Source: Neoechinorhynchus agilis (Eukaryota; Animalia; Acanthocephala). From it: DNA of 64,000 bases. The notes below the pieces were generated by a model that was not told the origin of the DNA, made no database searches, and was given only the letters and a program-made list of their open reading frames with translations. A program made the translations under genes and the position numbers. How positions within the stretch are numbered: position 1 is the first letter of the stretch; the number at the start of each line of letters is the position of its first letter. Location of the stretch: positions 12,415,480 through 12,479,479 of the forward strand of contig CM121342.1 in the NCBI GenBank assembly GCA_051530055.1. Reading direction: 5' to 3'. Below are positions 13,854 to 57,377 of the stretch, one piece after another.

Positions 13854-15052
13854 ATGATCGTTAATTTCATTGCATTCTTATCACTCGGAAATACTTACGG
13901 TTACAGGTGGTACTACGACCGAGCCAATTACACTCTCTTCCGTTCAAACAAAAGTGTAGATCTTACTAAGCCCAGATTTCAAGCTGTCAATTGTGACGAA
14001 GTTGAATTTGGTCGTAATCGAACTCTTGTAAGACTTATCAAATTTAGTGAATCGAACAAAACGTACCAGGGTTGCACTAAGAAAACTGGAAAGTGCAAGG
14101 AACATGCACATTTCGACGAAGAACTTAAACTAAGGATAAATACACCTCCTTGCTGTCGGCACAATCTTATTTTAACTTATTACGACGTGCTGGATGTTCT
14201 TGAAAATTTTAACTTTTCTTACAGTCTTTACGGTGGCAGTGTATTAGGTGCGTATCGAGACAACGGGCACATTACGATTGGTGATTTCTTCATATTTTTA
14301 TAACGTATGGGAATTGCCCTTAATTTAATCTCTTTTTTATAACTTTGTAATAATTTTCTTTTATAGGATCGGGTTCCGATGACAATTGCTGATTTTCTAG
14401 CAATTTGCATTACTTTTTATAGCAATCGTTAAACTAAAACCTGTATTTATCTTAAAAGCGTCTCCTGTCTTAAATGAAAGATTTTCGCTTTTTTCACATT
14501 TATTCGTATTTTCGGTCTAGCGAAAAAATATTACAGTGAACGCTGACATTTTGTTCATTCGTGCATTGTCATTGTATTAGCATTTTAATATTCCCACTTT
14601 AATTGATCGTTTGCCTTTATTATCTCAAAGCCAATGAAGAAATCATTTGTATTCCATACGACGACGATATAGATTTTATTGTGAACTCAACTGAATACGA
14701 TCGGTTCATGGCAGAAGCCAAACCAATTCTTGAGCAAGAAAAGAGTCGAAAACTTCAAGATGTAAGAGCAAGAAAGCAAACTCATATTCAAGTCAGCGAT
14801 AAGAATAAACTGTCAGTTGATATCTTTTGGTTCATCGACAATGGCACTTCAATTGATATTCAGTTCAATTTGCTTAAGTTCGACAAGAAGATGCTTTTTC
14901 CGACCAAACCGATTGTTTTTGAGAACAGGTCGCCACAAGGCCCATCAAAGGTGAAGGAACTTATGGGAAGACTTTATAAAAACTGGCAGTATCCTTTGGA
15001 TTGCAGTATTAGAAAAGGTCATAATTGCATTGGGAAACCCATGGCCTTTTGA
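13854..15052 (+). CDS. LicD/FKRP-family nucleotidyltransferase with a signal-peptide-like N-terminus, two exons
   Basis: GGSVLGAYRDNGH plus IPYDDDIDF reconstitutes the LicD motif; C-terminal LFPTKPIVFE...P...L...Y..W. The intron at 14274-14653 is non-canonical. Confidence 0.75.
14274..14653 (+). other. Putative non-canonical inverted-repeat-bounded intron (380 nt)
   Basis: 12-bp perfect inverted repeat TGATTTCTTCAT (14282-14293) / ATGAAGAAATCA (14634-14645); ATT direct repeat at the junctions. Confidence 0.65.
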
Positions 15053-16541
15053 TTATCAAATATTATGATTAAGCCGCTCTCTTTAATACGATGAACGTCA
15101 TGTGGCTTGTTCGCGGGTTTTTACAATTATTAAAACTTTTGCGAATTTTTCCTGAAACATGAATACTACAAAAACGTGCACTAATCGCACGTTTTGAAAA
15201 AGATCGATGTCAATATTGCCCTTTAAAAATTCGGTTTCTAATTTGATATTTTTAAGATAATTAAACTGTGAAAATGTATGTTTCCCGGTTACTTCCTAAT
15301 ATTTAGAAGCATTTAATTACAAATAGATGTATTAATCTGAAAAGGTCATTCAAAAACAATTTTTATCTCTGATTTTTCATTCACGAACTCCATTGATGCT
15401 GAGAGTATAAAACTGCAAAACACTTCGGAATTTTTCGGTTCGTCTAAGACTTTCAGGTTAATTTTTCAGCAAGTTGCAATATTTTCTTCTTCCTGTAAGA
15501 ATTGTTTTTATCGAGGAACCTAACCAATTTTAAGTTATTAGAAGTTTTTGTGTGCTCTGTAAAAATTCGCATGGGGGCTGAAGCCAATTATTTCTTTTCT
15601 ACTAATATTCCTATATTCGTCCCTGCGAAAAATCTTGTTGTGAACAGAAGAACTAAACCACTTTTAATTAAGTGATCTAAAAACGAGCCAATGAGACTTT
15701 TTGAACGAACTTTTTTGAGAAAATCTTGTTCAATTCGTGAACTTCTCTTTATTATGATAAAGTGAAATTGCGAAGATCTTCGCTCGAAATTCTTTGTGAA
15801 AATATTGAAATATTCGAATTTTTTATTGACAAGTAATAGACTGAGAGTACTAACGACAATATAAACATAAACTATTAATTGCTTTAAAAACTTGTTTTTA
15901 ATGGAATTTTATGTACATGTTTATGGTGATATCTATTTTCATCTTAATTTTTGGAAATCTATTTGTTGGGAAGTGTCGCTGTAAGCACAAATTGGATCTG
16001 ATGGTTTTAATATTGGTAGTAAATATATCACGCAGAATTGAAAAAATCGCAACTTTGAAATTATTAGTACAACGACAACAACTTGGGAGCGTTTAATTGT
16101 CTAGGAAACCACATAGCGGCTTAAATACCAAATAATTTGAATACCTAATAATTTTGTAGGGTTAGATAATTTATGGGTCAGAAATTATCATCTTCAGTAC
16201 TTGCTACGTTTCCATGTTTTATTTGGATCAAATTTCTTTAACGCAGAATATAAAAAAATAACTCACAAAGGCAACATGGGTCTGATAGATGTAATTAAAT
16301 TGGAACTGCAAAACAAACCTATGATATATAATTGGTTTAGATCCTTCAATTATTTTGACCGATCATCAAAAAATAGTTTTACTTGTCCGCTAATCCTTGA
16401 AGAACAATTACGGCAGAAGCGTCTTAAATGCTAAAAACCCAACATTAAAACGGGAATTTGCCGGTGTAAGAGTAAATCGTTTAAGTTTATGACCTTGGAT
16501 AAGCACTTAAAAGTGTCTGCAATATCTTCACGTGCATAAAT

Positions 16542-17156
16542 TTATTTAGACAAAGAATTGTGTGTGTTCACGGCATTATCGAAGTCGATTGAGAATCGTG
16601 TTCGCCCTTCATATTTTTTATACTCAACTCCAGCAAGACCAAAAATGATCCTGGCACCTTGACCAACAACCTTTGTCATGTATTTTTCCGAGTAATATAC
16701 AACTTTCCTAATTCCAGCCTGAACAATTAGTTTAGCACATTCATTACAAGGAAACATCGTGACATATATGGAAGTTGGAGCCACATTGGAGCTGATGGAT
16801 AATGCGTTTCGGTTCATAATTGCATTCATCTCGGCATGACACGCATAAGCGTACTTTGTTTGAAGATAATCTTCCATTTTGACACTTTCAAGTCCTTCTC
16901 CTCCATTCCATGGAAGCTTGTCATCCGAACATCCTACTGGGAATCCGTTATAGCCTATTCCAACAATATGGTTCGATGCCTCGTCCACTATACATGCCCC
17001 CACTTGAGTCCTTGGATCTTTACTTCTTTGAGAACTCAGGAAAGCAATGCACATGAAATACTCTTGCCATGACAAATAATCTTTACGCCCAAGATTATCG
17101 GGAATCACTTCTGGAAGAGGTGGCATCAAATCTGTCTCTTTTGAACTGTTTTCCAT
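16542..17156 (-). CDS. DCTD: Deoxycytidylate (dCMP) deaminase, intronless
   Basis: [35 protein letters not shown] and PCNEC motifs; first ATG at 17156. Confidence 0.95.
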
Positions 17157-17472
17157 TGAGACCTTTGTCCCAGATACCAAAGAATTATCTTAAATCATTT
17201 GGGGAAAAGTGTTAAAACCTGGCGACTGGTTAGAATGCAAGTCTACTATAAGTTTCTTTAGTCTTATAGAACATATTTCCTATATTATTTTTACATAATA
17301 TAAATTGGTTACAGTTGTATTTAAAGGAGCTACACATTTACGAATCAGTCATTAGACTGAAATGAGATTTACAAGCGGCTGAAAAACGAAAGCTATCCGC
17401 AATGAACACCCATTCGCTTCATTGGCATCAAAGGGACATTTATCTGAAGTAGAAGGGTGATTCGAATTTCAA

Positions 17473-18320
17473 TCACGCATTTGACTGTGTCCTTGCGGAC
17501 TTTGGTACCCAATCAAGATAATCGCTTTTTGCACAAGCCCTATACTCTTCAGCAAGTGTTGCTACGACTTCTTTGGCATCATCGAATTCGCTTAAGTTAT
17601 CAGCAAACATGGGTTCGCTTTTAAACCGTTCAAGAAAGGCTTCTCGTTTGATTAATTTCTCGTATTGTTTTATACATTTCTCAAACAAGCCAACAACACC
17701 CGTGTGATTGGCAAGCATAAGTCCATTAACTCGATGAGTGTGTTTTATATAAGGACTTCTTTGTGAAAGTGCCACCTGAATGGAAGCCGGTCCCCATGGA
17801 ATAAATTGAGCCAGGCGACGTTCCTTGATTCGAATAAGACTCTGGTGAACTTGTGGGATTTCAACCTGACCTTGAATGATATTAAGGATCGATATGTAGC
17901 AATGGGGAAAGTCCCTTTCTCTGGACATAGTGACCATGAAGTTTTTTGGTTGAAGAAGGCGTCGCATCACGTCCAGGACTGTAGTTCGTCGAACTTCACT
18001 TTCGTGCTGATCGCTAATGAGAGGAGTGTAACTTGAGATTAGGAAATGAGGATTTGGATTCGGAATCAGCGACGATACGAGTGTCGTCAAATCATTGTAC
18101 ATGTATCCAGGATATCGCAAGGTCGATGTACTCGCTGACATTATCGTGGAAATTAATTTATTAATCTCATCGAGGTCAGGGTTATCGATATGCAGACGCT
18201 CCGCTGCGATGTGGTTCAATGAATTGTTATCTAACACAATTACACAATCAGCGTTTTGAGTCAGTCGCTTTAGGGTCAGAAGTGCATTGTAGGGCTGTAC
18301 TATTATATCAGAAACGTCCT
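17473..18320 (-). CDS. TUBG: Gamma-tubulin, C-terminal part only (from about the SDIIVQPYN motif)
   Basis: [69 protein letters not shown]. No N-terminal exon was found in the window. Confidence 0.9.
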
Positions 18321-18659
18321 CTTGTACGGACGCAGTTCCAAGTTCAAGAAGGGGTCAAAAAGGCCGAAAATTCAAGATGAACAAAACACAGTGAACAGGA
18401 CATTGATTAAAAGAAAGTTTTAATCGATCATTGATTCTTCAGACCTTAGGGAGAACAAACAAAGGTACATAACTATATATCCTTCATCTTAGAACCAGCA
18501 AGTTAAAATGGTAACTTCTGTATGCGTCTTAGGACGAAATAAACGAGTTTCATAAAAAATTTTTTTTTTCAATCGCGTAGGAGTAAGCGAAAACACCCAT
18601 TACACGATTCAATTTTTATTGACGATCACGTGGATTGCCTCAGCAGTTGAGGTAGTCAT

Positions 18660-21600
18660 CTAATCCCAAGCTTTTGTGTCGCTATTGTCCTAGATGCAAT
18701 TGAACACTATTTGACAAGAAGCTTGCTTTTGAAGAAGTTTCAAGATGGAGGTTATCCATGGTGGGTCGCAGTTTGAGATTCTAATGAATTTCTTGGGAAT
18801 TGCCGAAGTTAAGGGATTTTTTATGATTGAGGTTAGGGAGAACATGGCCAAGGAAGGGTTATTTGTGTTGTCAGAGTGGAATGGGCGAATATTAGAGTTG
18901 AACAATTTTATAAAATTGTGGATGTGATGATCATGTTTATCCCAGACGGCTAAACGGAGAGATTTTATACGCTGAGGTGGGGTGCAGGAAGTAATAAGGG
19001 CAGAAGTGTGGTCAGAATACGCGGGGGGAGCTTAGAGGCGGATGAGTAGGCGTCGCTATTTGTGAACACGTTGTCAAGGTGAGCGTCGAGACGAGTTGGG
19101 AAGTCAATTAATTGACGCATGCCGCCTCCACCACCGACGACATTGATGGTGTCCCTAATCAAGGTTCCTCGCTTCGCTCGGAACCAGGATGCTAGTCGTC
19201 AATATGAAGACGGAACCTAACCCGCCCAAAACGAGCCAAATGAAAAGACCAAAGAAACGCCCAACGCTACCGGGACACCAGGTCTCTCCATAGGTATATG
19301 CCCCGTTTGTTTAGAATCTTTTTCAATCACGAAATTGGGGGGTTTTGCGCGTTCATGTTCCCGTCAAATCACGTTGTGGGGGATCTGATCGAATCCCGTG
19401 ATCGCTTCAACCGGTAACACCAGAAAATCCGTCGACGCTCCCCGATGACGCCGGGAGTCTTCCTTCCGCTGCTGATCTCGTGCGTGTTCTTCCCATGAAC
19501 ATTCTGAAACGGATCCCAAAGGGCGCACGATATCTAGTAGCTAAAGGATTATCCACACTTCTGCTGGACTGCTTCGAGCAAAATTCAGAGTCCTCTTGTA
19601 CACGGCTCTTTGCTTTCCCCAGACTAGTACTTTCCGCTGGCGACAGTTAGGAGGATTCCCTCACTGCGGTAATCAAAAGACGCCTCTCATCCTTGGAGTA
19701 AAGTTTCTTGAGCATTCGTCGTTTAGCAAAGGAGCATCCCAAACAACGTGCGAATGAGACTAACTTCCGTCGGACATCTACGAGACCGCTTGCTGAGCGC
19801 GTATCTTCAAAACTCGCTGATGGAGATGCTCGGGGAGCAGTCCATATTTTGTGCTCCTCTGATACATTTACAGGTGATTCGCCCTCCGCATTTCAGGGTT
19901 TAAAGTTGAAGCATCCGCAAAGTTCAACCCAAACAGAAATTCCTACATGTTCGGTCCCTCAAAGACACTTCACTTCGATAGTTGAACTGAGAATGGCCAT
20001 ATGCTCCTTCGCCAATGGCTCTAGCCATGACCTCCATGGGTTTCGTCCTCAGCACCTAAAGGATATGATGTCGTTCTCAGTTGGAGATGCAGACATCTCC
20101 CTTGCCACCCATCTTTGTCGACTAGTCGACCTTTCATCGAAGAAAATTTACATCCGCGGGCAATTGAGTTGTTTTTTTGGCGCATCTTTGTGCGCTTTGA
20201 ACAAAAAGACTGGTGGGATTCATCCCATCGCCGTTGGCTCTGCTCTACGTCGGCTCGCAGGTAAAATCCTTTGCAAGCGTATTGCAGAAAGGATAGGACA
20301 GCATTTTCGCCCAGCCCAACTGGGATGCTGCACACCCTGCCGGTCCGAAATCATTGTCCGCGTACTCCACAGGTTTATCACCAATAGTTCAACGCCGTGT
20401 GTGATTTTGAAGTGCGACTTTACAAATGCCTTCAATTCCATTCACCGTACCATTCTGTTTGAGGCACTAAAAATTCACGCACCAGAAGCTTTTCCTTATT
20501 TTCTCAACGCATACGGGACCCCGACTCCTTTGCTGTTCAACGACCACATCATTTGGTCCGAACGAGGAGTACAGCAGGGAGACCCTCTCGGTCCAATCGC
20601 TTTCTCCCTTGCAGTGAATCCAATAGCGCACTCTCTCCAGTACAACTTTAACGTTTGGTGCCTGGATGACGCTACGCTCGGAGGTAATCCCTCCGTAGTA
20701 CTGCGCGATCTGGAGACACGTGAGGGATACTGCGAGATTGGGCGTTGAGCTTAATGCAGGGAAATGCGAACTGTTTTTAACGAACATCGAAAACGAGTCA
20801 GCGCAGAGCAAAATCGTCAAAGGTTTCAGAAATCTGGCACCCGGTATAGAATTGATCACTCTAGACCGGCTGAGTCTTCTAGGGAGCTGCGTTTTTGATT
20901 CTAATGTGGAAAATGAAATCAACCAACTACTCCCGAACATCACGATGGTCCAAGAACTTTCGTCACACGAGGCTCTATTCCTGATCAAGAATACCCTCTT
21001 TATCCCGAAACTACTTTATAAACTGCGCGCGGCTTCCTTCTTCGAGCACGTCGATAAGTTAAAGAAGCTCGATGACATTGTGAAGGTGTTTCTCGAGCAC
21101 ATTTTAAATATCCAGCTATCAGACGAGGTCTGGCGACAAGCTTCATTGCCTGTAACGTACGGTGGCTTGGGTATTCGAAAAACGGTAGATGTGTCGTTGC
21201 CCGCGTTTTTAGGATCATTCGAAGGGAATCGGGATCTGGTAAAAAGTATATTGGGACCCCAGTTCTGTTAAGGGGACGAATTTCTAGTAACGGTACAGGA
21301 ATGGTGGGAGAAGACGGGTTACAACCAAGTTCCCGTGAATGGCCTAAAGCAGTCTATCTGGGATAAACCTTTAGTCGCCCGAGCTCATAGTTCTCTAATT
21401 TCAGGCTCTCGCGACGAAGTCGACCGGGCTAGATTGCTGGCAGTCTCTACAAGAGAATCGAGAGAATGGTTAGAAGCCCTACCCATTGCATCGTGGGAAC
21501 ACTCCTCGTAGACGAAGCAGTTCGGATCGGAGTGTCCTTCAGATTTGGTTTACAGATTTGTGTCGAACATCGTTGCCGATATGGAATGATCGTGGATCCA

Positions 21601-23800
21601 CTGGAGGGACATGGTCTTGTTTGCAAAAAATCAGGGCCTCGTTTCTCACGGCATGCTGAATTGAACGACGTAATTTCGCGGGCCCTAAATACGTTGAACG
21701 TCCCAAACATTTTAGAGCCAAGCAATCTGTGCAGGCTAGATGTCCATCGTTTGGATGGCGTCACCGTATTCCCCTCTGGCGAGAAGGCAAATGTCTTCTC
21801 TTGGACGCCACGTGTGTAGACACGTTTGCGGCAGGTAACGGGAGGTTTGTGGTGCAGTCCCCAGGGGGAGCGGTTACTGCTGCTGAGGATCGAGAGGTGG
21901 CGAAATATAGAGAATTAAGTAGGTCACCCTTTGGAGTGGAGACTCTTGGTGCGCTCTTTAGCTCGGCACTTAGATTTATAAAGGAGTTATCGAGTAGACT
22001 CCAGGCCAAGACAGGAAATACAAGAGCTGCTGCCTTCCTACGCCAAAACATTGGTCTCGCGATCCAAAGAGGAAACGCAGAGAGTGTAGTCGCGACCACT
22101 GAGGATAGAGCGATGCCTCTTCGTGGACGGTGGTGATTCTTGAAACGTTTTGTTGTTGTGTGTATAACCGGGGAATGTTAATAAAATGCTCGTCGTGCTC
22201 GGAGAAGGGTAGAAGAGGAAAAAGTTTATTGAATTCCCCTGCAATTAAGAAATGGTGTGAATTTGTGGAGCTTATGAGCTCCATTATAGAATCGGGTTGG
22301 CATAAAGAGGACTCCGGGCGAGAGGCAGGAGGGCGATGACGCCCGCAATGGTGAATTCTCTAAGGCCATTTCTGTGCGGTGAATTGAGAGATAAAGAGTA
22401 TGGTAGCGATTGCCGTACGTAAATTGAGACCTCCCTGGACGGTCCTCGCAGTATGTATAGAAGGAGGAGTGCCCGTGAAGTATTGCTGAATTGCTGTTGA
22501 AGGGGTAAGCCACTTTTCTGCTAGGATGACTACGTCGGCTTTTGAGGTAGAAGAAATGAGTGAAATTTCATCTAAAGGGAATTATGGATTTCGGCAACCC
22601 GGGACGGAAATGAGGGAAATTGGGGTTACGCTGCTCTTCGCGGGTGGTGGATTAAGGGAGAAACGTTACAAGTTGCCGATACGGAACGATTGATTATCCC
22701 AACGAGAGAAGTCTGGAAGCGAATTGAAAATTTGAGAAATGAGTTTAGAGTTGATACTTTGTAGAGATCAGCTACGGTTGGACGGGTCGATTTATGGTGT
22801 TTTAGAGTAGCGGTAGAGCGATAATTATTTACTTGATTTGGGAGAAAGAGAGTGTTTAATGCGGAAGGGGTGGGAAATTGATCTTTGTGGTAGTTGAACG
22901 TAATCAAAGAAACTGGGAAGTCGCTTACTCTTCGAGTTTTTTGGATGGGAGAGTTGTTCTCGGGTGTTTGCTAAAAGTGACGGGCTACATTGGGAAGATG
23001 AGTTCTGGGTTGAGTTTGGAGGGCATTAGGAAATATTTTGTGATGCATTCTTATGTGGATAGATACGAAAAGAAAATTGAGAAGTAAGGAGTTTGAATCT
23101 TCTGTTAAGAAAGAGGGAAGCTACGAATGGTGAAATAAAAGTTAGTTTGAGGAGACGTGGTCTCGGGTTAAAGGGATTTTTGGATGGAATGCGCATAACT
23201 GTTAATGGGGGAAGAATAGTAGAGTGAATGTCGGGGAAAATGAGTCGATCGATACGAAGAAATTGGTGGCGGTTGTGCGAATCAGCGGCGACAGGGGCTT
23301 CCGGCGTATCCCTGAGGGAGGAGTGCATGACACGATGCGTCGAATTCATAGTGGCGAGGGATGATGGGCAAGGTGGAGAAGGTGTATCATTTCAGAAATG
23401 AATCGGAGCGTTGATTGATTTTGATGGTGTTGGTGCACAATATCATACTGCTCCACAGTAATTTTAGAATCATAAAGTACTACAGGCTGAATATCATCTA
23501 AGGGTGGTACCAAATCAATAATAATTGTCGAAATATTCGCAGTCTTTTGAACACCATTTGTTTGCAACAAATCTTCGTTTGATTTTGGCGTGCTGATGGC
23601 ATCTACCAAAACCTTATTTTCCTTTGCGGCTGCGTCACTACCTGATTTCTGTAAAACGCTAGATAGTTTCTTAGAATCTCCCTTTGGAAGCTTTGCTTGC
23701 CTCTTTGAGCCCCTAGTTCTTCCCTTTGCACTTTTTGACTTCGATCGACTGTTCACTTTCAAGAGCTTCCATTTCGTACTGAATAGCCTCCGCTAATAAA
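18660..23800 (-). mobile_element. Decayed CR1/L2-like LINE (ORF1-like region plus APE), interrupted by the CRE insertion; RT half absent
   Basis: FLIAGEFN, QLIDFPTRLDAHLDNVFTN and DPPWITSILKLL fragments. The frame is rejoined across the 19144-22185 insertion. Confidence 0.7.
19144..22185 (+). mobile_element. Near full-length CRE-type (RT plus restriction-like endonuclease) non-LTR element, frameshifted
   Basis: CPVC...RVH zinc finger, GVQQGDPLGP and CLDD RT motifs, CEHRCRYG...HGLVC zinc knuckle, RLDG...DATCVDT RLE, QRGNA C-terminus. Ends in AATAAA; 2-bp AT duplication. Confidence 0.9.
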
Positions 23801-24059
23801 CCCTTAACTGTGCTCGTCGCTTCAATTAATGAAGCCTTTAGAGTTTCAGTAACTCGTTCAAAGCACTTCCTTAGTACAACACCAATACGAGTGGAATTTC
23901 ACTGTTCATTGATTTGTAGAGAGAGTAGACGTTGACGAGAGAGGACGTCGACGTAGAGAGGACGTTTGTATGTCTTTTTCTTGGATACACTACAAATAGG
24001 TCGATTTTTAATATTTTCATTGTGAATTACATCAAATTAATAAAAAAAGATCGCGGAAA

Positions 24060-26110
24060 AAGTAGGGATACTGCTTCGCCCTACTCGGTTTGGCTGCTGT
24101 ACACCTTGTGGCGTAGAGGCGATCGTTCATTCGCAACGCACTTTCATCACCGGAAACTCAAAGCCGTGCGTGATCTTGAAATGTGATTTCAAAAATGCAT
24201 TCAACACAGTTCACCGAGCAGATTTGTTCGACGTAGTTAGAGATCACGCACCAGAAGCATTTCGCTATTTCGTTAATGCCTATGGGACTCCAACACCCTT
24301 GTTGTTCAATAATCACGTTTTGTGGTCAGAAAGAGGATTTCAACAAGAGGATGCTTTTGGCCCAATAGCCTTCTCACTCTGTCAGTTCCGTCGCGCACTC
24401 CATCCAGTCCAGCTTTAACGACTGGTACCTGGATGATGCCACGCTCAGAGGTAAGCCCACTGTAGTACTGCGCGATTTGGAGATACTCGTGAAGGAGACG
24501 GTGAAAATTTGCATGGAATGCTGCGAAATGCGAGATTTTAGTGATGAACGTGGAAGACGAGGTGAAAAATGTTTGGAACCTGGCCTCCCGGGATAGAATT
24601 GATCACTCTAAACCGGTTGACTCTTCGTGCAAGCGGTATTTTTTACTTAAATGTGGAAGCAGATGTTGCCAACCTTCAACCGCAACCTACGATGCTGTGC
24701 AAACGAGTTTGTCCTAACACCTCGGCAAAACAACCAACGTCGTAAATAACTTACAAGTAAATATCTGATCCACATTAACATTCCCCCAACCAACTCAATC
24801 GCGCGCTGAAAATTATACAATTTACCAAATCAAATATCTATTGCTAGCTGAGCGTTACATGCTCTGAGGAAAATTGCCTAATTGCAACAGCAATTAAAGT
24901 ACCATCAACACTAAAGAAAGATTGCTCATCATGTGCTGCTGGTTTCTGGTAGCGAGCGGCAGTCTTTATTATCCCCCAATTGCTTCTGTGGGTACCCTTC
25001 TCTCCGACGAGACAGTAAGGATTGCAGTGTTCCTGAGACTTGGGGTATCGATGCGCACATCCCATCGCTGAATTTCCTTAAGAAACCATTTTAGTTTTTT
25101 AAAAGCGAGCCTGTATTTAATCTAAACATAATATTGGATGATTTGAATTTAAAACCCGAAAGGAAAATGGAAAACGTAATTGCTGAACTAAAATCAATAT
25201 TGATTGAATCATATTCATTTGTAAGCGAAATTCCACACTTTGGAAAGGTTTGATTTCTCGCTTTTTTTCGGCTCAAAGAAAAACCTAGCGTATCTGAGTA
25301 TTTGGTTCAAAGGAGGGCCTGGCGTATGTGAGTATCCGGCTCAAAGAAAAACCTAGCGTATCTGGGTATTTGGTTCAAAGGAGCACCTGGCATATCTGAG
25401 TATCCGGCTCAAAAGAGGACCTGGCGTAGCGGAGTATCCGGCTCAAAAGGAAGGAGTCATTGCTCAAAAATAAAAAGGGAGGAAACTGATTCGGTGTTGA
25501 GGAGACTCAATGAGTCACAAGCAAACACGAAGATGAGAAGAGTCACTTGCGGAGCGATCGTGGAACCATCGAGACGCCATGATCTCGTCTGTCGGCAATC
25601 AGGCGAAAGGATACTCACGACACGTAGAAGTGAACGACATTCTTATTCATGCCCTGAATTCTGTGAGTGCATCAAACATTTTAGATCCGAGCAATCTTTG
25701 ATGGCTCGATGGTACTAGAGTGGACGTTGTCACAGTATTCCCGTGGGGATTGAAGGCAAATGCCTCGTCTGGGACGCCATATGCAGCCAGCAACATAAAA
25801 TTCGGCGCTATTAAACCAGGGGAAGCAGCGACCGCCGCTGACGAACGCAAGACTAAAGAAATCATTTCGTTCCCTTTGGCATCGAGACACTGGGATCGTT
25901 TGGTAACGCGGCGGAGGATCTGGCCCGGGAATTGTAGAAGAGACTGAGATGAATCACTGACGATCCGAGATCAAGAGCATTTCTTCTGCAAAACTTCAGT
26001 CTGGATGTGCAACAGGGGACGCTGCATGCGTCCTTTCGACCTTTACACTAGGACGGAAGCTGAGTGATCCAGAGCGGTGGTGTAAAATGTTAATAAACTC
26101 TTTTGGTAAA
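24060..26110 (+). mobile_element. Fragmented second CRE-type copy or copies
   Basis: ILKCDFKNAFN and GFQQEDAFGP at 24060-24710, RIAVFLRLG at about 24940-25070, RLE and 3' end at 25540-26110. Confidence 0.8.
25270..25450. repeat. 34-bp minisatellite with alternating A/B units, about 5 units
   Basis: GGCTCAAAGAAAAACCTAGCGTATCTGAGTATTT alternates with GGTTCAAAGGAGGGCCTGGCGTATGTGAGTATCC. Confidence 0.85.
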
Positions 26111-32137: not shown

Positions 32138-32314
32138 CGATATTTCCTGTGATAATTCCGACATTATTAAGGGTTGTCATTGTAAATTGTTCCAAGATAA
32201 AAGAGAAAGTTAACTCTCATTGCGAAAAATTGCTTTTTAACTTTCTCTTTTATCTCCAAACAACCTACAATGACAAACCTTGATAATATCAGAATTATCC
32301 GATGTGAAATATCG
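32138..32314. repeat. About 177-bp fold-back with about 75-bp imperfect arms; the right arm carries a hammerhead-like motif
   Basis: CGATATTTC...AAGAGAAAGTTAA / TTAACTTTCTCTT...GAAATATCG; TTGATAA...GAAATATC at 32279-32315. Confidence 0.8.
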
Positions 32315-43600: not shown

Positions 43601-44973
43601 AAACGCATTTTATATATGAAAGAAATCGTTTGTTAAAGGAATGTTTTTGGCTTGGATAACCCGGCCACCAGGATAAAAGTATTCAACTAAATAAAGTGTC
43701 GTAAAATGAAAAATAAAGATTTCCTGCGAACGCTAAGATCTAACGCCGACAAATGAAATGCTCAACAATGGCCATCGAAAACCATTTAAAGAAATAGTAA
43801 ACAATAATGAATGCAAAGTTGGCGATTGTTTAGAAAATGTTAAAAAAGTGCCTCAGAAAACGAATTTTATACATGAGAGAAATCGTTTGTCCAAGGTTTG
43901 TTTTTGGTTTGAATCACCCGGCCACCAGGATAAAAGTATGAAACTAAATAAGGTGCCGTAAAGCAAAACCACGAATGCTAATATCTAACGCCGACAAATG
44001 AAATGCTCAACAATGGCCATCGACAACCATTTAAAGAAATAGTAAACAATAATGAATGCAAAGTTGACGATTGTTGATAAAATGTTAAAAAAGTGCCTCA
44101 GAAAACGCATTTTATACATGAGAGAAATCGTTTGTCCAAGGTTTGTTTTTGGTATGGATCACCCGGCCACCAGGATAAAAGTATGACACCAGGATAAAAG
44201 TATGCAACTAAATAAAGTGCCGTAAAACGAAAAATAAAGATTGCCTACGAACACACTAAGATCAACGCCGACAAATGAAATGCTCAGCAATGGCCATCGA
44301 AAACCATTTAAAGAAAAAGTAAAAGCAATAACGATCCAAAGTTAGCGATTGATGAAAAATGTTAAAATGCCTCAAATATATGAAGGCGTTTGTCCAAGGA
44401 TTGTTTTAGGTTTGGATCACCCGGCCACCAGGATAAAAGTATGAAACTAAATAAAATGCCGTAAAACGAAAAATAAAGATTGCCTACGAACGCTAAGAAC
44501 TAACGCCGACCAATGAAATGCTCAACAATGGCCATCGAAAACCATTTAAAGAAATAGTAAACAATAATGAATGCAAAGCTGGCGATTGTTTAGAAAATGT
44601 TAAAAAAAGTGCCTCAGAAAAGGCATTTTATATATTAGAGAAATCGTTTGTCCAAGGTTTGTTTTTGGTTTCGATCACCCGGCCACCAGGATAAAAGTAT
44701 GAAACTAAATAAAGTGCCGTAAAACGAAAAATAAAGATTGTCTACGAACGCTAAGATCTAACGCCGACAAATGAAATGCTAAACAATGGCCACCGACAAC
44801 CACTTAAAGAAATAGTAAACAATAACGAACGCAAAGTTCGCGATTGTTTAGAAAATGTTAAAAAAGTGCCTCAGAAAACGCATTTTATACATGACAGAAA
44901 TCGTTTGTCCAAGGTTTGTTTTTGGTTCGGATCACCCGGCCACCAGGATAAAAGTATGAGTAAATAAAGTGCC
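34645..44973. repeat. Tandem satellite array, 257-bp monomer, about 40 copies (10.3 kb)
   Basis: AGTGCCGTAA recurs at 34741, 34998 and 35255 (period 257). Monomer variants recur at about 770 and 1283 bp spacing. Confidence 0.98.
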
Positions 44974-45033
44974 ACCTTAAATCTAACTTCCCACAATTTA
45001 AATTTTTTGTTCTTATACGTCATGAAATCACCC

Positions 45034-45759: not shown

Positions 45760-50345
<4,586 letters not shown>

Positions 50346-51247
50346 TATGCTCAAATGGTCAAATGGTGTATGATAAAGCTTGTTATCTCCTTTTCGCCTG
50401 AATTCACATAATGCAGCCAATATGTTCAGCAGATAGCTCGGGATGCTCTAGTTGTGCAGATTAAAAAGTCAATAATCATTCCCAGCGATCTTTTGACCCC
50501 AATCGTTATTGTAATTTCTGTTTGCATTTTGGAAATTTTTTTCTTTTGACAACTTATGCTTTAGGGTGATATTTGGAAATTCGTTCTCAATTCTTCGAAA
50601 TCCTGTGATTTTATTCTTGGTAGAATTTCCACTGCAATGCATTTCGCTGACCTCCTCCGCTAAAACGTTCAAAGTAAATCGTCACTCCGAGGCAAAAGTA
50701 GCTCGCTCAATTTCACATCCTTACAGATGAAGTCATGGCCCAAACAACTTCGAATTCATCAAATAGTCGTTCTATGTTTCGACCATAAACTCGGACCCAC
50801 AGTGAGCATTTTTATATGTGCTTAAATCCCTCGCTTTCATATATCTCAATATAGATCGAGTATATATATCCAGCGTCTTGTTCTTTAAGCGACCAAATAA
50901 AGAATGAATTACTTAGTCTCTCGATACCCGACGGATCCCATAAATTCGAGTCTGGTTTGTGTACCCCACAGCGTGGCGAAATATATTCGTCTTTTTGATA
51001 GATTTTGTCTATTTCACCTGTGCAAACAGTAAATCAAAACCAATATTCTGTGTTGCGTGTTATCACCAGCAACGTTTAAATGTAACTATTCGAGAAAACC
51101 TTTTATAATTTCACCCCGAGGAAAATTTGTTTAGGTTGAGCAAAAAGATAGGCACCCGTCTTTGACCCGTAATAGTATCCAAAAAAGCATTGTACTCTTG
51201 ATGTCACTAGTAAGTGCTTTCTTGTATCTAACTATCAACGCAATTAC

Positions 51248-54072
51248 ATGTACTCATGTAACTTCCAGCCATTGTTTGAATATGTGAGACAAAAACTTGA
51301 TATTCTTGTCTCTGATTTTATAAAGAGTGACTGTATGACCGATTTTACGGTAATCGATCGTGCTTTCGATCACCTACAACAAACTACGATTCATAGTCCA
51401 ATATACAGAATGCATTTTGATATTGGTAATTAAATATATCGATGTTTTTCCAACCTTAAGATCTTTGCCGTTCAGGTGTTAGTCCATCGGGAATTGTCCA
51501 CAAATTCAAATATCGTCTTTTGACCGTATTCAAACTACTTTTGCTTTCAAAGAAGGTTTGTTTCATCGGAGTCGGCCAAAGAACAACAGTACAAAATCGC
51601 AATGAATCTTTGTCCTCGTAAACATGGGTTTTTTCTCAATAGCAATGTTCTACTCGCAGTCCCGTGCTTTTTTACCAAACAAAATAATCAACCGATCCTC
51701 GGGCCAAACTTGTGAAGGTTTTTATTCCAGCTTGTTACCTCATTAGCAAACAAAGCTCAATGCTGGGTCGTCATTTATATCAGTCAGCAAAAACAGAATC
51801 AGTTTTGTTTTTGTCACAATTTCTCGACCTAAGAGATTATTTAACATTTGCTCCGGATTCTCTTTCTGTAGACGAATGCGCACAAAGCCTTCTTTAGACT
51901 CTTTTTCGCACATTGTGTCGGCTTTTATGCAATCCACGCAACTCAGCCTTCGCGCAGGTTGTCATATTGTCAAGTCCGTGTGAGCTTCTGGGATCGACAA
52001 TTCTGTCACTCGTGTCCTTATTTCCAAGTAAGTCTAAGTTAGATCCTTAAGGGAAAATTCCTGATAAACCTACGCTCCTAGATGCCCTCATCGCAGAACA
52101 ATCATATAAACTGTTTATTGGTCCAGATAAATCTAAATCGCAGCCAAAACAGCGGCGTTCTCTTCCAATCACCGAAAGTTTTCTAAGGCATAAAATGAGC
52201 GTCAGATCCCGTTCATTAGAGATGAAAAAGGAAATAAACAAATCGACAAAGCGGTATGTTATCAATCACACGAGTCAGTCGGCGTACCGTATTTCGACGA
52301 ACGATTGTCGATTCATGGAGCGATTTCTATCAAATTTCCATTTATTCGGAAAGGTAAAAACACTTGTGTTTGTGCTTGAGTAGATTGTCGTTGTGATTAG
52401 GCTTGCTTATTATACCCATACGCCACTATGGATATCTTTGATGTTTTAAGGAACCAGAGTAATATGACAGAGATCAGGCAAGGGGAAAGTTAGAAACCAT
52501 ATTCATTACAGGAACGGTTGAAGGATATTCATATTTGAGCGTCTAATAATCTGTAGTACACATCTAAGCACAGGTGCTTTTGGTGCTTGAGAAATTATGG
52601 TATTTTAAGTATCGGTAGTAGTTCGAGCAAAAACCTCTTTTTCCGTCTACAAGCTAAATCTGATCTCTGAACAATAAAGGATGCTTAGCCGGAGTTTCCA
52701 ATTCACTTATCACGGACTACGATTATGTCGATTGTGTAATCTCGGTCAGTACATCATTGTTCTTCGACGAAGTAAATTTTTCTTAGTACGATGGAACCAA
52801 CATCTTCAAATGCCGTCCTCATTTAAAAGATTTGATACGTCCTTCCTCTGCTGATATTAAATTTATGGATTTAATTATTCGTTCAAGCTTGAAGCACAAC
52901 GAAACAGCATCGGTAGATGATCCATTAGATGTATCAGTAAAGCAAATGTTTTCTATCTATCTTGCTTCTCTTATCAGTACATGTATCGAAAACGGTTTGA
53001 CTTTAGTCTCTTTAATTCATAGATTTGATATTGCCGGTGATCAGCTTAGATGAGAAGAATTTCGCGGACTTCAATCGAGAATTCGTTGAAGCCTTTATGC
53101 TTACAGGAACATTCATGGAATTCATTAACTGTTACGATGGGTTCATAAAGGACTCCTTTTGTCGGTAAGCTAAATTGTTTTGGTTAAAACCTTGATGTCT
53201 TCAAGCGACTGATAATAGGCATCCGTGTTCATTAAAGAATAGCGCTATAAGAAGTAGAATTGACAGGTACTGTTGGATATGATTTGTGATTTACAAAGTG
53301 CTTCTCTACCTTCAGAATAATCGAGGACTTAAGAAGAGATAGATTAGCGGATATTGGATCAAATGTGGGACGAGTAGTTGGTATGTGAGTGTGTTCTCCT
53401 AATTCGTACTGGTGTCAACCGTTTTTTTGCAAACAAAATTGCAAAGGCCTAGATTTTTTGCATGAACCGTTACTCTTCTTTATGAAGTGTTCACGAACGC
53501 GGCTGCGGAGACATGATCTTTTACTACATTTGTTAATCCCAATCAATCAAATTGAAATAGACTGCTTCTTTTATATTTTCAACATTATCCACGAAAGGCC
53601 ACTCATAATCGGTCCTCGATCAATTAGACTAATTGGACGGATTTTTACCTTAAAAAAACAAGCATTTCGTTTGGGATTAGAGTTACGACGTGACCTAAGC
53701 TTCCATCTCAAACTTGATTTTAGACTCAATGCGTGTTTATTGTTTAGATTCCGCACTTGGAAATATTCGCAACAGGATCACGTCCGTGAGATCAAAGCTA
53801 AAGAAAATGTGATTATTGTTTTCACCTGTGAAAATGTTCAAATAGATAAATTTAGTATGCTAGTGCATGGTTCTACTTTGATGAGGTTCTATGAATGTTT
53901 TGTCGACCAGCATTACACTTTGTTTTCACTGAACATGACGTTCTTCAATCAGTTTGTCCTTTTATCCCTCGTTGGTTCCGACCACTTTTTGAGCCTATGT
54001 TCAAAAATATTCTCTAATTTTTGCGCTCAACTACTTTATAGCCCCATCGCATATAAACGCCTTGAAGATTGA
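51248..54072 (+). CDS. Probable multi-exon gene of unknown product; exon structure unresolved
   Basis: Series of + strand ORF segments (51248, 51712, 52832, 53389-54072) with GT-AG intron-like gaps such as gtaatt...ccttaag at about 51426-51460. No family recognised. Confidence 0.4.
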
Positions 54073-54149
54073 CCACAAAGAGGTTGTAAAATCTTTAGCG
54101 TTCCCAACAAACCTATTTCTTGGTCCTTAAAAAGACTCCTTTAAAGACA

Positions 54150-56475
54150 ATGAAAAGGCAAACTTCTGAAACGATTTCAACTGAATCAGAGGTGAAGGAA
54201 GCAAAAGTTCTACAAATCGATGACAAGTTACCAACGGCTCCATATTATCGTCAGAGTTTCATGCATCGCGACACTGTAACTCATGTGCTGGTAGTTCGTC
54301 GAGCTGATTTTGTGTTCACTGGAAGCGTGGACGGTCATGTTAAGCTGTGGAAAGTGAATGGTTATCATCAACGAAACGAACGCGATATCCGAGATCCGGT
54401 TGAGTTTGTAAAAGATTTCCACGCCCATTTAGGCCCGATCAGTCAGATGTGTCAGAGTCGAAGTAAAACCCTAGTTGCTTCTTTGTCAGCGGAAGATCGT
54501 TCATTTAAAGTCTTTGACGTTCATACGTTCGATATGATTTGTATGCAGAAGCTTTTGTTTGTACCACAATCGATGGAGTTTGTCGACGCAGAGACGACCA
54601 ATGGGGTTCTTTTATTATCAGATGCAGCCTCAGAGCGGATTGCTGTCTATGACTCTTCTGATTTTTCTCTGGTCGGAACATTGCCAAATATGCCTCACAA
54701 ACATCCGGTAAACCACATTCGATCTCATCCGTATCTTAATGTGTTTGTATCCACGGACACGATGGGAATGATTGAACTTTCCTATGGAGGCCGAGAAAGC
54801 GACGCTGATGGTCATCAACCTGGCACGGCCGTTCAATCACCGTTCGTAACTTTCCGGTCAAAGTGCACAACAGACATGTTTGTTCTTTGCATGCAAAAGA
54901 CACGAGCCCTCGATTTACAAATTAGTGAGGATGGGATGAAACTCGTAATCCTTGCCGAAAATAGATGCATTTACGTTTTTGATATCGAAACATTTAAACT
55001 CATACGGTCGTTTGATCAAAGGAGAGACAGTGAGGCTTCTAAAAGATGGTGGATCGTAGATCAAAAGAAAATGAATGATATGGATATTGGTAGAAAAATG
55101 GCTATTGAAGAAGATATCGACAAAGATGCGTTCTAATCGAAAATCAATTGTTGCTCGATAACAAATTTTCTTAAAACGTAGTCTTTAAACAGAATTTTTG
55201 GGATTTTGCAATTCACTTGAAAAAAGTGCTATTGTAGAATCGTATCTTTACATTTCGATTCAATTTTCACATTTTGCGTTTCGTCTTCTTCAAATCACAA
55301 CAAATTTAGAATTCTATTTCGAGCCTAATTTAAACCTTAAAAATTGACGCAAACTTTTCTCGTCTTAAAGCTTTAAACGATTTCACTCCCGCCTTGCCTT
55401 CAAATTCATTGCTCCCTTCTTGACTCCCATCGGACCCTTTGAAGAACTCTTTTGAACTTGGGAGCAACAATCGATTTCCATCCTCATCGCCGCTCTACAA
55501 GCATTCTGTACAATTCGATCCGACAAATCCAGACCGAATCTTGATCGGATCAGCAGTAGGTATTCGTATTTTAAGCATTAAAATAGGCGATGAACGTGAT
55601 ATTTCAATAGGCCAAGGTGAAAATATCCGTCCTCTTTGTTTCGATATTTGGCCAGAATCTGGTCAGCCGGCTCGCTTTGCTTCAGTTGAGGCAGCTGCGG
55701 CCGCAAGTTTGACTGGTGGTTCGTTCCGAACTACAGCTATTATATTCTCGACAGCTTACAAATCGAATCGATTTTTCGTTCTTGAAGGCCATATCGACGA
55801 TCCATCAGTCATTGATCTTCCCGAAAGTGAAGATCGTGATATTATGAACGAGCGTCCATACCACGACGCTCTAAGTCTCGGTCAAGAAGCAAGGAACCGA
55901 TTAGGTCAAGCTGATGCAATTAAAACCGGTTGTGGTGGGGTTAGGGCATCGAATGCTGTGATCCATACAACGCTGGGTGACATTGCTGTTCTCTTGTATC
56001 CAGAGCAATGCCCTAAAACAGTAGAGAATTTTTGTAGTCTTGCCCAGACTAATTACTATATCGACGGGCGTAAACAGAGAAAAGTCTTGAAGGTTTACGC
56101 TTCGTCTTGCTTAACGGGCACATCTTTCACCGGGTGATCCGTCAGTTCATGATACAAACCGGAGATCCACTTGGAACCGGTGTAGGTGGTCAGTCTATTT
56201 GGGGACATGATTTCGAAGACGAATTCCATCCGTCGCTTAAACATGATAAACCGTACACGCTGTCAATGGCAAATGCCGGACCAAACTCAAATGGATCTCA
56301 GTTCTTTATTACCGTTGTTCCTTGTCCATGGTTGGACCAAAAGCACACTTTGTTCGGACGAGTGATTTCCGGAATGGACGTTGTTCATAAAATCAATAAT
56401 CTAAAGGTTAACAAGAATGACAAGCCTGAAGAAGACGTCAAAATTATGTGTATCTCTCTTAAAAGAACGGTTTAA
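54150..56475 (+). CDS. PPWD1: WD40-repeat plus cyclophilin protein, three exons with two non-canonical introns
   Basis: [109 protein letters not shown]. Confidence 0.95.
55136..55497 (+). other. PPWD1 intron 1, putative non-canonical intron (3' junction uncertain)
   Basis: 16/18 inverted repeat GAAAATCAATTGTTGCTC (55139-55156) / GAGCAACAATCGATTTCC (55462-55479); TCTA direct repeat. Confidence 0.55.
56060..56112 (+). other. PPWD1 intron 2, 53-nt non-canonical hairpin intron
   Basis: Removal gives TNYY|[21 protein letters not shown] pairs with GTTTACGCTTCGTC; TA direct repeat. Confidence 0.75.
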
Positions 56476-56495
56476 TGTTCGATATGCGAGTCCCA

Positions 56496-57377
56496 TTAGA
56501 ACTTTGCGCTCAACAGGGTGTATATAGCCGGATCGTTTTTGCATTTTTCAACTAAATCTTCTTCGGTTACTTCAGTGGACAATCCAAATAGCTCGTGCAC
56601 CGTCTGTTGACTTATAAGTAGACAATCCTTGTTTTCTGCCATGACCATGGTTCTGGTGGTCATTTTTGTACATTTCTAGTTCACAATATAAGTATAGTCT
56701 TATAATTGATTTCTAATATTCGGGCATAAAAAAGCGGGTTGAAGAATTTTAGTCTTGAAGGACTCGCGGAGAAATTGGCACTCAGAAAACTACAATGGAG
56801 CGAATAATCTCCTCCGAGCGTCAATTAAGATCTTTAAAGAAATTTCTTTTTCCCGTACTCTTGCGAATCAGAACCACAGTCGTTCATGGTCCCATGCAGC
56901 GGGTCTGAAAATACAAGCAATCAAACTCAGAATATACCGAGCATCATCACGATTCAATGTGCTTTTTTGTGCAACACTTTTGTTTTGTTTGCTTAACAAA
57001 TAGAATCCAATCGAAACCCGGAGTCTGTCGAGAGGAAGTCCATACAACATGTTCAATGTAAACATATAATCCAGGAAATCGAATGTTTCCTTCTTTAATG
57101 CGTTAGTTACATTTCTTTGAAGTAAATTAGCTTTACGCTCGTTGTAGAACGATGAAAAAACTCCATTGAAAACTGACTTTGACAGTAATCCATCCGGACA
57201 GTCAATCAGAAATTTTCGGTACCAATTTTCTATTTGTACGGGGTCAGTCATGAATTTTCCTCGTTTTAAGACATTCAGCCATTCTGGATTTATGGTCGCA
57301 GAAGGACTAAGTGTTTTTTGGTCAGGTGAAATGAATCCATCAGACGGGTGATCGTAATCTTCAGTGCTTTGTCTCAT
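56496..57377 (-). CDS. Divergent neuronal calcium sensor (NCS/frequenin/KChIP-like) protein
   Basis: IENWYRKFLIDCPDGLLSKSVF matches the NCS N-lobe. An unannotated last exon (about 56496-56636) reads TEEDLVEKCKNDPAIYTLL*, like the NCS C-terminus. EF loops are degenerate. Confidence 0.6.

Follow-up and report, generated by a model that had tools for sequence, protein, structure and literature searches.

Non-canonical, mostly end-paired interruptions in conserved genes of the acanthocephalan Neoechinorhynchus agilis resemble insertion-derived introns

The DNA analysed here, called the window, is a 64,000-nucleotide stretch of the genome of Neoechinorhynchus agilis (assembly GCA_051530055.1, contig CM121342.1, positions 12,415,480 to 12,479,479). 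Among the genes in the window are GTF2H1, LicD, a dCMP deaminase, the 3' part of a gamma-tubulin gene, PGM, POLR1B, PPWD1 and an EF-hand gene of the NCS family. A first-pass annotation, made from the nucleotide sequence, had described six interruptions in LicD, PGM, POLR1B and PPWD1 and a likely seventh in the NCS gene, and had proposed that these are introns defined by the pairing of their ends rather than by GT and AG. It took the host to be an animal, and rightly so: protein ACOME3_007591 of N. agilis, an eoacanthocephalan parasite of fish, matches the translated POLR1B exon (47647-48654) with 100% identity, and the runner-up, from a bdelloid rotifer, reaches 47%. The record of this protein equates window position 37074 with contig position 12,452,553. 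The set of elements considered here comprises eight in the window and two, in NAXD (Carb_kinase) and gamma-tubulin, in a neighbouring locus of the same contig, L006 (CM121342.1:12,382,932-12,403,546), ten in all. Elements in the window are told apart by their window starts and are called LicD, PGM-1, PGM-2, POLR1B-46574, POLR1B-48655, PPWD1-1 (55136), PPWD1-2 (56061) and NCS (Table 1).

The stop-to-stop open reading frames (ORFs) flanking each interruption were translated, joined by an X and aligned to solved structures, such that the ends of the exons were marked by homology and not by prior choice. The interruptions and the junctions that restore homology are confirmed as real. The six interruptions listed at first lie within a few nucleotides of the positions given for them, and removal restores a conserved protein each time. 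The suspected seventh is also real, as the joined NCS protein, ...YILSLIAC^TKMTTRTMVMAENK, aligns without a gap to hippocalcin (AIYKMVSSVMKMPE; longer stretch ...AIYKMVSSVMKMPEDE) and to GCAP2. POLR1B-46574 was absent from the earlier list.

The alignments determine the junctions as follows. In PGM-2, homology to rabbit and human PGM1 extends to YETA and resumes at TGWKYF, with 15 non-homologous residues looped out. At PGM-1 the residues LT are encoded on both sides of the element, since one ORF ends in GLILT and the next contains LTASHNPGG (compared with the rabbit and human enzymes), and eight registers yield the same protein. The alignment of POLR1B-48655 to human RPA2 runs through NAIVAV, loops out 15 residues and resumes at (M); the annotated protein, P0001, reads into this element and ends in ...AVYIPERIF followed by a stop codon. 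On a rotifer-like Logan contig (L003) the POLR1B orthologue reads through the position without a break, and the element is therefore a lineage-specific insertion. POLR1B-46574, gapless against the human protein when cut at TA/TA, can also be read as a 427-nt GT-AG intron at 46571-46997 (GTACGT...CATTAG), which yields GNRQYYVPL, one residue longer than the human sequence. In PPWD1-2, which interrupts the cyclophilin domain, TNYY falls at residue 528 of human PPWD1 and NGHIFHR follows directly. The TA/TA join of PPWD1-1 exactly fills a five-residue gap relative to human PPWD1 (IDKDA extends to residue 355 and VQFDPTN starts at 361), and this junction is the least certain of the set because its loop is weakly conserved. 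The LicD join, based on alignment to FKRP and on the Pfam LicD model, reads GGSVLGAYRDNGH(I) and then IPYDDDIDF; an alternative 377-nt register, 14275-14651, has TA/TA ends and gives GHI^IPYDDD. At the nucleotide level the predicted exon-exon junctions include CTAATGCTATTGTGGCTGTA^ATGTCATACACTGGATATGA in POLR1B, TGCCCAGACTAATTACTATA^ACGGGCACATCTTTCACCGG in PPWD1 and TTGACGCAGGATTAATTTTA^ACAGCCAGCCACAATCCAGG in PGM.

Table 1 Non-canonical elements and ordinary introns (^ marks an exon-exon junction; window coordinates unless stated).
Feature	Coordinates	Strand	Length (nt)	Junction or ends	Register or direct repeat	Remarks
LicD element	14274-14653	+	380	GH^IPYDDD	ATT/ATT	
PGM-2 element	29138-29378	-	241	YETA^TGWKYF	5' TA, 3' AA	PDB alignment
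PGM-1 element	30091-30550	-	460	GLILT^ASHNPGG	TAAC	PDB alignment
POLR1B-46574 element	46574-47003	+	430	GNR^YYVPL	TA/TA	PDB alignment
POLR1B-48655 element	48655-49009	+	355	NAIVAV^MSYTGYD	TA/TA	PDB alignment
PPWD1-1 element	55136-55497	+	362	DKDAF^YKHSVQFD	TCTA	
PPWD1-2 element	56061-56113	+	53	TNYY^NGHIFHR	TA/TA	PDB alignment; minimal hairpin
NCS-family (EF-hand) element	56669-56911	-	243	IAC^TKMTTRTMVMAE	TGTA	
NAXD (Carb_kinase) element	in L006		520	NTILT^PNAMEY	AC(T/G)C	
Gamma-tubulin element	in L006		274	after SVFPLQE	CAAGAG (6 nt)	weak pairing
Ordinary introns, POLR1B	47443-47490, 47570-47611, 49400-49451, 49609-49650	+ (47443 as example)		GT-AG		
Ordinary introns, GTF2H1	9188-9243, 9341-9382, 9768-9832			GT-AG		

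To list the possible ends, each removed segment was slid from -8 to +8 nt at its homology-restoring length and the terminal dinucleotides and the resulting peptide were recorded for every register. The same protein is obtained from 3 to 8 registers per element because of the direct repeats at the borders. Within ±8 nt, none of the eight in-window elements has a register with GT..AG, GC..AG or AT..AC ends, in agreement with the first-pass annotation. U12-type introns were considered and rejected, as there is no AT..AC register and no U12-like motif (ATATCC or GTATCC) at the 5' end of any element.

The seven ordinary introns identified in POLR1B and GTF2H1 show what the usual pattern is in this genome. 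They are 42-65 nt long, begin with GTGAGT, GTAAGT, GTAATT or GTATGC and end with TTAG, AAAG, ATAG or TAAG. The elements fall outside this pattern, with lengths of 53-460 nt in the window and ends unrelated to GTRAGT...TTAG. Thus, the two kinds of interruption coexist, as had been claimed. PGM and PPWD1 contain no ordinary intron, and the dCMP deaminase, PTH2, BAF-like, leucine-rich-repeat (LRR) protein and hnRNP-R/Q-like genes nearby consist of a single exon each. In the well-conserved genes of the window the odd elements (7-8) are about as numerous as the ordinary introns (7-8).

Canonical splice pairs that keep the frame do exist at lengths other than the homology-restoring one in LicD, PGM-1, PGM-2, PPWD1-1 and PPWD1-2, and some of them are used in the deposited BRAKER gene models. 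The earlier statement that canonical ends are lacking at the motif-restoring junctions holds for the length that restores the motif, and the other lengths score far worse against Pfam. For LicD, the Pfam LicD score is 57.3 bits (380 nt) or 52.0 bits (377 nt) versus 36.4 and 32.9 bits for GT-AG alternatives. PGM_PMM_I at PGM-1 scores 94.7 bits versus 54.9 with BRAKER; PGM_PMM_III at PGM-2 scores 80.1 bits versus 63.3 for a GTTGG/GT-AG alternative and 57.4 with BRAKER; and Pro_isomerase at PPWD1-2 drops from 185.9 bits to 171.7 with a 23-nt GT-AG alternative and to 163.1 with BRAKER. Overall, the canonical alternatives cost 14-40 bits.

Ordinary splicing at such cryptic GT-AG pairs, roughly as BRAKER models it and with odd insertions and deletions in the proteins, is an explanation that these comparisons render distinctly unlikely, even though usable pairs are available for five elements, POLR1B-46571 has good GTACGT...CATTAG ends and acanthocephalan proteins are fast-evolving. 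The BRAKER model of PGM (P0121) lacks CSTPAASYMIRSMELDAGLILT, the segment that precedes the phosphoserine loop TASHNPGG, and has AKRSWRLWKC inserted instead; that of PPWD1 (P0122) lacks a conserved 23-residue stretch and the catalytic 11-residue cyclophilin segment; that of LicD lacks GAYRDNGH. A brute-force rebuild of the 608-aa PPWD1 model from GT-AG pairs gave 2368 solutions and was uninformative. Cryptic splicing thus entails either such losses or insertions of 8-10 residues in core motifs, and it leaves unexplained why the flanking codons, which would be spliced out, are conserved in frame. Its sites are unlike the tight GTRAGT/TTAG consensus and the 42-65 nt length of the real introns. 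POLR1B-48655 and NCS have no usable canonical pair at all. In POLR1B-48655 no in-frame pair exists because stop codons lie just inside both ends of the element.

The lack of a bridgeable pair in POLR1B-48655 accounts for the deposition of POLR1B as three genes of 267, 504 and 413 aa. POLR1B-46574 is left unspliced by BRAKER, and the 267-aa model terminates at a stop codon within that element. NAXD (L006 107-1538) is likewise represented by two genes (181 aa and 142 aa), PGM, PPWD1 and LicD are bridged by means of spurious GT-AG pairs, and the NCS model is truncated, running into the element and then into a stop codon. The BRAKER annotation is systematically affected, and the gene counts, protein sets and BUSCO (benchmarking universal single-copy orthologues) figures for the species inherit the errors.

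Direct repeats flank every element. The form TA-element-TA fits seven of the eight in-window elements, in that removal of the element with one TA yields the homology-restoring protein: LicD, PGM-1 (within TAAC), POLR1B-46574 (GTA), POLR1B-48655, PPWD1-1 (TCTA), PPWD1-2 and NCS (TGTA). In LicD the ATT/ATT register is preferred over TA/TA by 5 Pfam bits. PGM-2 is the exception and its direct repeat consists of A only. The first-pass annotation had recognized the repeats and found TA in four cases, which is too low a count. A random interval offers a TA/TA register with a probability of 0.010, 0.023 or 0.044 within ±1, ±3 or ±6 nt, respectively, and the probability of at least six of seven TA/TA by chance is below 5e-8, a result that holds after a 16-fold correction for the post hoc choice of TA. 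When all ten elements are considered, 7/10 are TA-bounded and 10/10 combine a direct repeat of 1-6 nt with non-canonical ends.

A further feature of the 5' ends is a CG within 4 nt of the TA in the sense orientation, present in 5/8 elements (TACG, TAACG, TACG, TAATCG and TATCG; window positions 14275, 30550, 46574, 55136 and 56061) on both gene strands, and also at about position 590 of L006 (CGAACG). None of the in-window elements has a CG near a TA-bounded 3' end, and CpG is scarce in the window, at 4.3% of dinucleotides. This asymmetry, noted post hoc in a small sample, may reflect polarity or a strand-specific signal. Targets of the Helitron or piggyBac type were rejected, as neither an A^T nor a TTAA pattern is present.

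End-pairing was measured as the RNAduplex energy between the first 40 nt and the last 40 nt of an element. Compared with mononucleotide shuffles, the z values range from -2.7 to -5.0. A harsher control, given the many foldbacks in the region, used 1500 length-matched intervals taken at random from the window. With this control the empirical p values are 0.038 for LicD, 0.000 for PGM-2, 0.056 for PGM-1, 0.059 for POLR1B-46574, 0.0013 for POLR1B-48655, 0.047 for PPWD1-1 and 0.0027 for PPWD1-2, and the Fisher combined p for these seven elements is 2.5e-8. PGM-2 has the strongest end duplex (-30.7 kcal/mol), reached by 0/1500 random intervals; the duplex of POLR1B-48655 is -25.6 kcal/mol. In the NAXD element, which has no TA register, the end duplex is -20.7 kcal/mol and is equalled or bettered by 0.066 of random intervals. 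None of the seven ordinary introns shows end-pairing, as 0.39-0.81 of random intervals pair equally well or better. End-pairing is thus significant for the set of window elements as a whole and absent from the ordinary introns.

The perfect inverted-repeat runs are 10-13 bp long in 7/8 in-window elements and the imperfect stems comprise 13-28 pairs. The terminal pairing first described is thus present in most elements, whereas the length of 11-26 bp attributed to it needs revision and NCS pairs weakly. Between the 5' TA and the start of the inverted repeat there are 0-5 nt, and four elements have a symmetrical stem whose base is 0-5 nt away from each junction. The perfect inverted repeat of LicD (TGATTTCTTCAT/ATGAAGAAATCA, 12 bp) reaches the ends, where the terminal TAs pair with one another. 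The 11-bp perfect repeat of POLR1B-46574, CGTCGTGGAAT/ATTCCACGACG, begins 2 nt inside the 5' end; PGM-1 also has a perfect repeat of 11 bp, and PPWD1-1 has one of 16 nt that is 94% complementary. The stem of PPWD1-2 has 13 pairs, with the 3' arm 8 nt inside the junction. An all-against-window BLAST detected no similarity among the elements or their inverted repeats, as the first-pass annotation had maintained.

Bulge-helix-bulge introns, the type removed by tRNA endonuclease, were considered and rejected. Their design calls for a helix formed by the two exons and a second one, of 4 bp, that joins the 5' end of the intron to exon 2, with 3-nt bulges on either side. In the elements, exon1:exon2 pairing does not rise above background (0.11-0.96 of random intervals are equal or better), and neither does pairing of the intron 5' end with exon 2 (about 0 to -3 kcal/mol). 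No Rfam family or tRNA was detected in scans of the window.

Two of the element interiors, which had been described as unpaired, contain nested repeats, namely those of PGM-1 and POLR1B-46574. PGM-1 includes a 154-nt repeat (30272-30425) that is 92% identical to window 22013-22163 and has no tRNA or Rfam match. The interior of POLR1B-46574 includes a 148-bp foldback (46709-46856) of the same family as 34388-34545. With these secondary insertions the two elements tolerate extra sequence in an intron-like manner. As to the nested sequences themselves, the 22013-22163 copy adjoins the 3' end of a retroelement and the repeat may be a tail resembling a short interspersed nuclear element. The two foldbacks, akin to miniature inverted-repeat transposable elements (MITEs), have common ends, (A)TGTTTGTTTATGGCGTAAA, and arms of 49-65 nt; neither copy is TA-flanked, and the copy at 34388-34545 sits at the edge of a satellite.

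The form of the elements, in which short direct repeats of 1-6 nt (for the most part TA) are combined with terminal inverted repeats, points to an origin by transposon-like insertion. MITEs of the Tc1/mariner type (Stowaway-like) resemble them in duplicating a TA target site, in having terminal inverted repeats of 10-30 bp and in being small and non-coding. They occur as families with shared terminal repeats and many copies, whereas the ten N. agilis elements share nothing and have no window copies. Exonic MITEs normally destroy the gene.

It is probable, in our assessment, that the elements are transposon-like hairpin insertions in coding exons that are removed as nonconventional introns, with removal at the RNA level. 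According to this model, small elements with terminal inverted repeats would insert into coding exons of N. agilis, duplicating or using a short target of 1-6 nt that is most commonly TA and in most cases Tc1/mariner-like. The element together with one copy of the direct repeat would be cut exactly from the transcript such that gene function is kept, and this exact removal would be the reason why the elements persist in essential genes. Pairing of the near-terminal arms would bring together exon ends that are unmarked by GT or AG. Joining would be carried out by a spliceosome that recognizes ends less strictly or, with lower probability, by a non-spliceosomal cut-and-ligate activity, while the ordinary 42-65 nt GT-AG introns of the same genes would be processed in parallel. 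We infer that removal acts on RNA and that it needs the hairpin, and we infer the machinery from the form of the elements. Among the three mechanisms put forward in the first-pass annotation (an altered spliceosome, a non-spliceosomal nuclease and ligase, or excision from DNA), spliceosomal or other RNA-level removal is ranked first. The broader interpretation of the elements as structure-defined introns retains its observed basis, namely that the interruptions are real, non-canonical and mostly end-paired, have unshared repeats, and are located in apparently single-copy genes beside GT-AG introns.

Several observations weigh against RNA-level removal guided by the hairpin. About 8/10 elements are clearly end-paired, and three of the ten show weak or asymmetric pairing. 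The weak ones are NCS, for which 0.75 of random intervals pair equally well or better, and the gamma-tubulin element outside the window; POLR1B-46574 and PPWD1-1 have a 3' arm set back from the junction by 16-19 nt. In view of this weak or offset pairing, the hairpin may be a relic of insertion and not a recognition signal. The sense and antisense end-duplex energies of the ten elements split 5:5 and hence carry no G.U signature of selection on an RNA fold; the split fits young inverted repeats at the DNA level. A scan of the window for TA-hairpin-TA returned 45 hits versus 54 for an AT-hairpin-AT control, that is, no enrichment; the hits are dominated by long foldbacks and include no new intragenic cases. 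No second copy of any outer element is present in the 64 kb, and thus mobility is judged from form alone. The protein database searched contains no N. agilis protein of transcript origin. Finally, the combination of direct repeats and terminal inverted repeats also serves DNA-level excision, as the pointers of ciliate internal eliminated sequences (IESs) demonstrate, and a transposon-like origin fits RNA splicing and DNA excision equally well.

The elements could accordingly be IES-like, excised precisely from the DNA of somatic or transcriptionally active nuclei with one pointer kept, in which case the assembly would represent germline-type DNA. Removal of an element with one direct repeat restores the frame every time, the boundaries are TA/TA in 7/8 in-window elements, the variable repeats of 1-6 nt are pointer-like, and terminal inverted repeats without strand bias in energy are what a DNA-level signal predicts. 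The resemblance extends to the insertion of short, unique, intragenic sequences bounded by TA (Paramecium, Euplotes) or other short repeats (the pointers of spirotrichs). However, the DNA came from pooled whole worms and yet the element occupies all ten sites, including LicD in both of its genomic copies, which argues weakly against excision from most somatic DNA. TA is not obligatory, in contrast to Paramecium, given the 3' AA of PGM-2 and the non-TA repeats of NAXD and gamma-tubulin. Ciliate IESs are removed in a separate somatic nucleus, have a TAYAGYNR consensus (Paramecium and Euplotes) and do not require a long hairpin, whereas the N. agilis ends do not follow that consensus. To our knowledge, no animal excises IESs precisely from within genes. 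We regard DNA-level excision as unlikely; if true, it would amount to ciliate-style gene unscrambling in a metazoan.

In translational bypassing the ribosome hops between matched codons, as in phage T4 gene 60 and at the byp elements of Magnusiomyces mitochondria, over gaps of about 55 nt or less. The terminal direct repeats of the elements and their 5' hairpin resemble the take-off and landing sites of such hops. One element, PPWD1-2, has just such a length (53 nt), but the TAT before its gap has no matching landing codon before AAC. The remaining 7/8 in-window elements, at 241-460 nt, are far longer than known hops, and many stop codons occur in all frames inside the elements. Bypassing is therefore an extremely remote explanation.

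A further alternative is that the interrupted genes are unexpressed, being recent deleterious insertion alleles, pseudogenes or assembly artefacts whose functional copies were collapsed or purged. The assembly lends itself to this suspicion. It comprises 46.2 Mb (JBMGUZ01) and was built with MaSuRCA from Oxford Nanopore, HiFi and Illumina reads of pooled worms, followed by purge_dups and Hi-C scaffolding, with annotation by BRAKER using RNA-seq (PMC12690905). The region is transposon-rich, and L006 carries a second copy of the block of GTF2H1, LicD, dCMP-deaminase and gamma-tubulin genes. The LicD/dCMP-deaminase/gamma-tubulin(3') part of it, at window ~13846-18700, is duplicated ~39 kb apart with about 99.9% identity; from ~13846 to at least 15300 there is one mismatch in about 1450 aligned bp. 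One boundary of the duplication is located just upstream of the LicD ATG, beside a GC-rich repeat. The window gamma-tubulin (17476-18354, - strand) is a truncated duplicate that starts at residue ~175, its first 174 residues being found nowhere in the window; the break falls inside its non-canonical element and abuts retroelement sequence, while the gene in L006 is full length (478-aa model). The block is either a very recent segmental duplication or two uncollapsed haplotypes scaffolded in tandem.

Nonetheless, dead copies are a very unlikely explanation for the set. The exons on either side of the ten elements all retain long open frames and conserved residues, and the two copies of LicD carry identical elements. 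A deleterious allele at 7/7 essential-gene sites in a consensus of pooled worms is implausible, and errors of long reads do not take the form of 53-520 bp inserts that have defined direct and inverted repeats. The existence of intact paralogues elsewhere, which the first-pass annotation had named as a way in which these copies might prove to be pseudogenes, was checked in a search of 5.8 billion proteins. POLR1B, PGM and PPWD1 each matched a single N. agilis protein (P0001, P0121 and P0122, each a one-member cluster) and no second one. The three host genes thus appear to be single-copy, with no intact paralogue in the protein search.

Transcriptome BUSCO exceeds genome BUSCO for both the metazoan set (54.9% vs 47.1%) and the eukaryotic set (71.0% vs 58.4%) (PMC12690905). 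This is expected if transcripts are free of interruptions that gene finders cannot bridge, and it fits DNA-level excision equally well. The text of the genome paper does not contain the word 'intron' and its supplement has no transcript or splice data (PMC12690905). Splice sites are likewise undiscussed in the papers on Seison, Pomphorhynchus and rotiferan reduction, and no report linking introners or such elements to Acanthocephala was found in the literature searched.

Other parts of the window are of a different nature. A 257-bp satellite of about 40 tandem copies (90% matches) occupies 10 kb at 34646-44973, between the LRR gene and RPL37A, and gives that part its strong AT skew. At 565-713 there is a perfect (TTA)x50 microsatellite. 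Several ORFs of the reverse-transcriptase (RT) and gag-like kind, of the type without long terminal repeats, are found at 927-8700, 19400-25900 and 62900-64000 and are seemingly unannotated in the deposited genome; the 703-aa RT ORF at 927-3035 (- strand) has no relative at E <= 1e-20 among 5.8 billion proteins. Another RT ORF is interrupted by an insert of ~247 bp (8074-8320) flanked by the 12-nt direct repeat CTTAATTTAATA (8062-8073 and 8309-8320). This insert, with a hairpin of 42-nt arms (8065-8283) and a nested one of 26-nt arms (8114-8181), is a class of hairpin-bearing mobile element distinct from the TA-bounded ones. Other large unique foldbacks lie at 11091-11190, 12007-12118, 32151-32299 and 58242-58463. 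An Avl9/DENND11-like gene (50727-52493, + strand, 333-aa model) consists of many short, poorly conserved ORF pieces, is too diverged for the placement of junctions and may hide further non-canonical elements. Extension to the right, by way of the hnRNP-R/Q-like gene, gave only unannotatable genes.

If confirmed, N. agilis would be the second animal lineage, the first protostome and the first animal parasite with a sizeable class of end-paired, insertion-derived introns without GT-AG ends, and TA-bounded, family-less elements would be the particular flavour of this lineage. It would be an independent replay of what occurred in Fritillaria, Amoebophrya and the euglenids, and a natural experiment on the birth of introns and the tolerance of splicing. 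Acanthocephalan genomes would then need re-annotation, and claims of gene loss based on BUSCO would need re-examination. Part of the 'missing' or 'fragmented' BUSCO fraction may be an artefact, and drug-target work on these parasites of fish rests on such gene models.

The N. agilis features match the introner elements of the alveolate Amoebophrya, a parasitic dinoflagellate, almost one for one. Those elements have non-GT-AG ends with no preferred dinucleotide, 5' and 3' ends related by an inverted repeat of 8-20 nt, and short direct repeats that span the borders and leave their exact position ambiguous; the splice position is not fixed with respect to the hairpin (Farhat et al. 2021, PMC7789003). 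They too lack a family-specific inverted repeat, and Amoebophrya is also a parasite with a compact genome in which gene prediction is disturbed; U1 is undetected there (PMC7789003). Some canonical introns of Amoebophrya have the identical repeat layout, which provides a parallel for the dual GT-AG and TA reading of POLR1B-46574 (PMC7789003). In contrast to the mostly TA repeats of 1-6 nt in N. agilis, the direct repeats of Amoebophrya are 3-5 nt long and varied; repeated families exist there, whereas none is seen within the 64 kb window; and RNA-level removal, which is shown by RNA-seq in Amoebophrya, is deduced in N. agilis (PMC7789003).

The nonconventional introns of Euglena gracilis have no GT/AG, their ends are juxtaposed by terminal pairing, repeated bases blur their borders, conventional introns occur in the same genes and an origin from transposons is suspected (PMC11170887, PMC12501133). 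They differ in a weak end consensus, a pairing of about 10 nt and the detection of excised circles (PMC11170887, PMC12501133). With 10-13 perfect bp and as many as 28 pairs, the stems of N. agilis exceed this length, no consensus extends past TA, and the evidence is that of the genome sequence. The sole precedent among animals is the tunicate Fritillaria borealis, a larvacean, in which introns arose from the terminal repeats of transposons (Henriet et al. 2019; bioRxiv 10.1101/2025.08.15.670264). There, more than 90% of introns are non-canonical, AG/AC and AG/AT ends are favoured and the introns derive from families (bioRxiv 10.1101/2025.08.15.670264), whereas in N. agilis no AG/AC or AG/AT ends occur, the termini differ from element to element, the inverted repeats are unique and the canonical consensus is tight. 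Elements of this kind are known from protists and one tunicate lineage; their presence in Acanthocephala is new with respect to the literature searched and was missed by the genome annotation.

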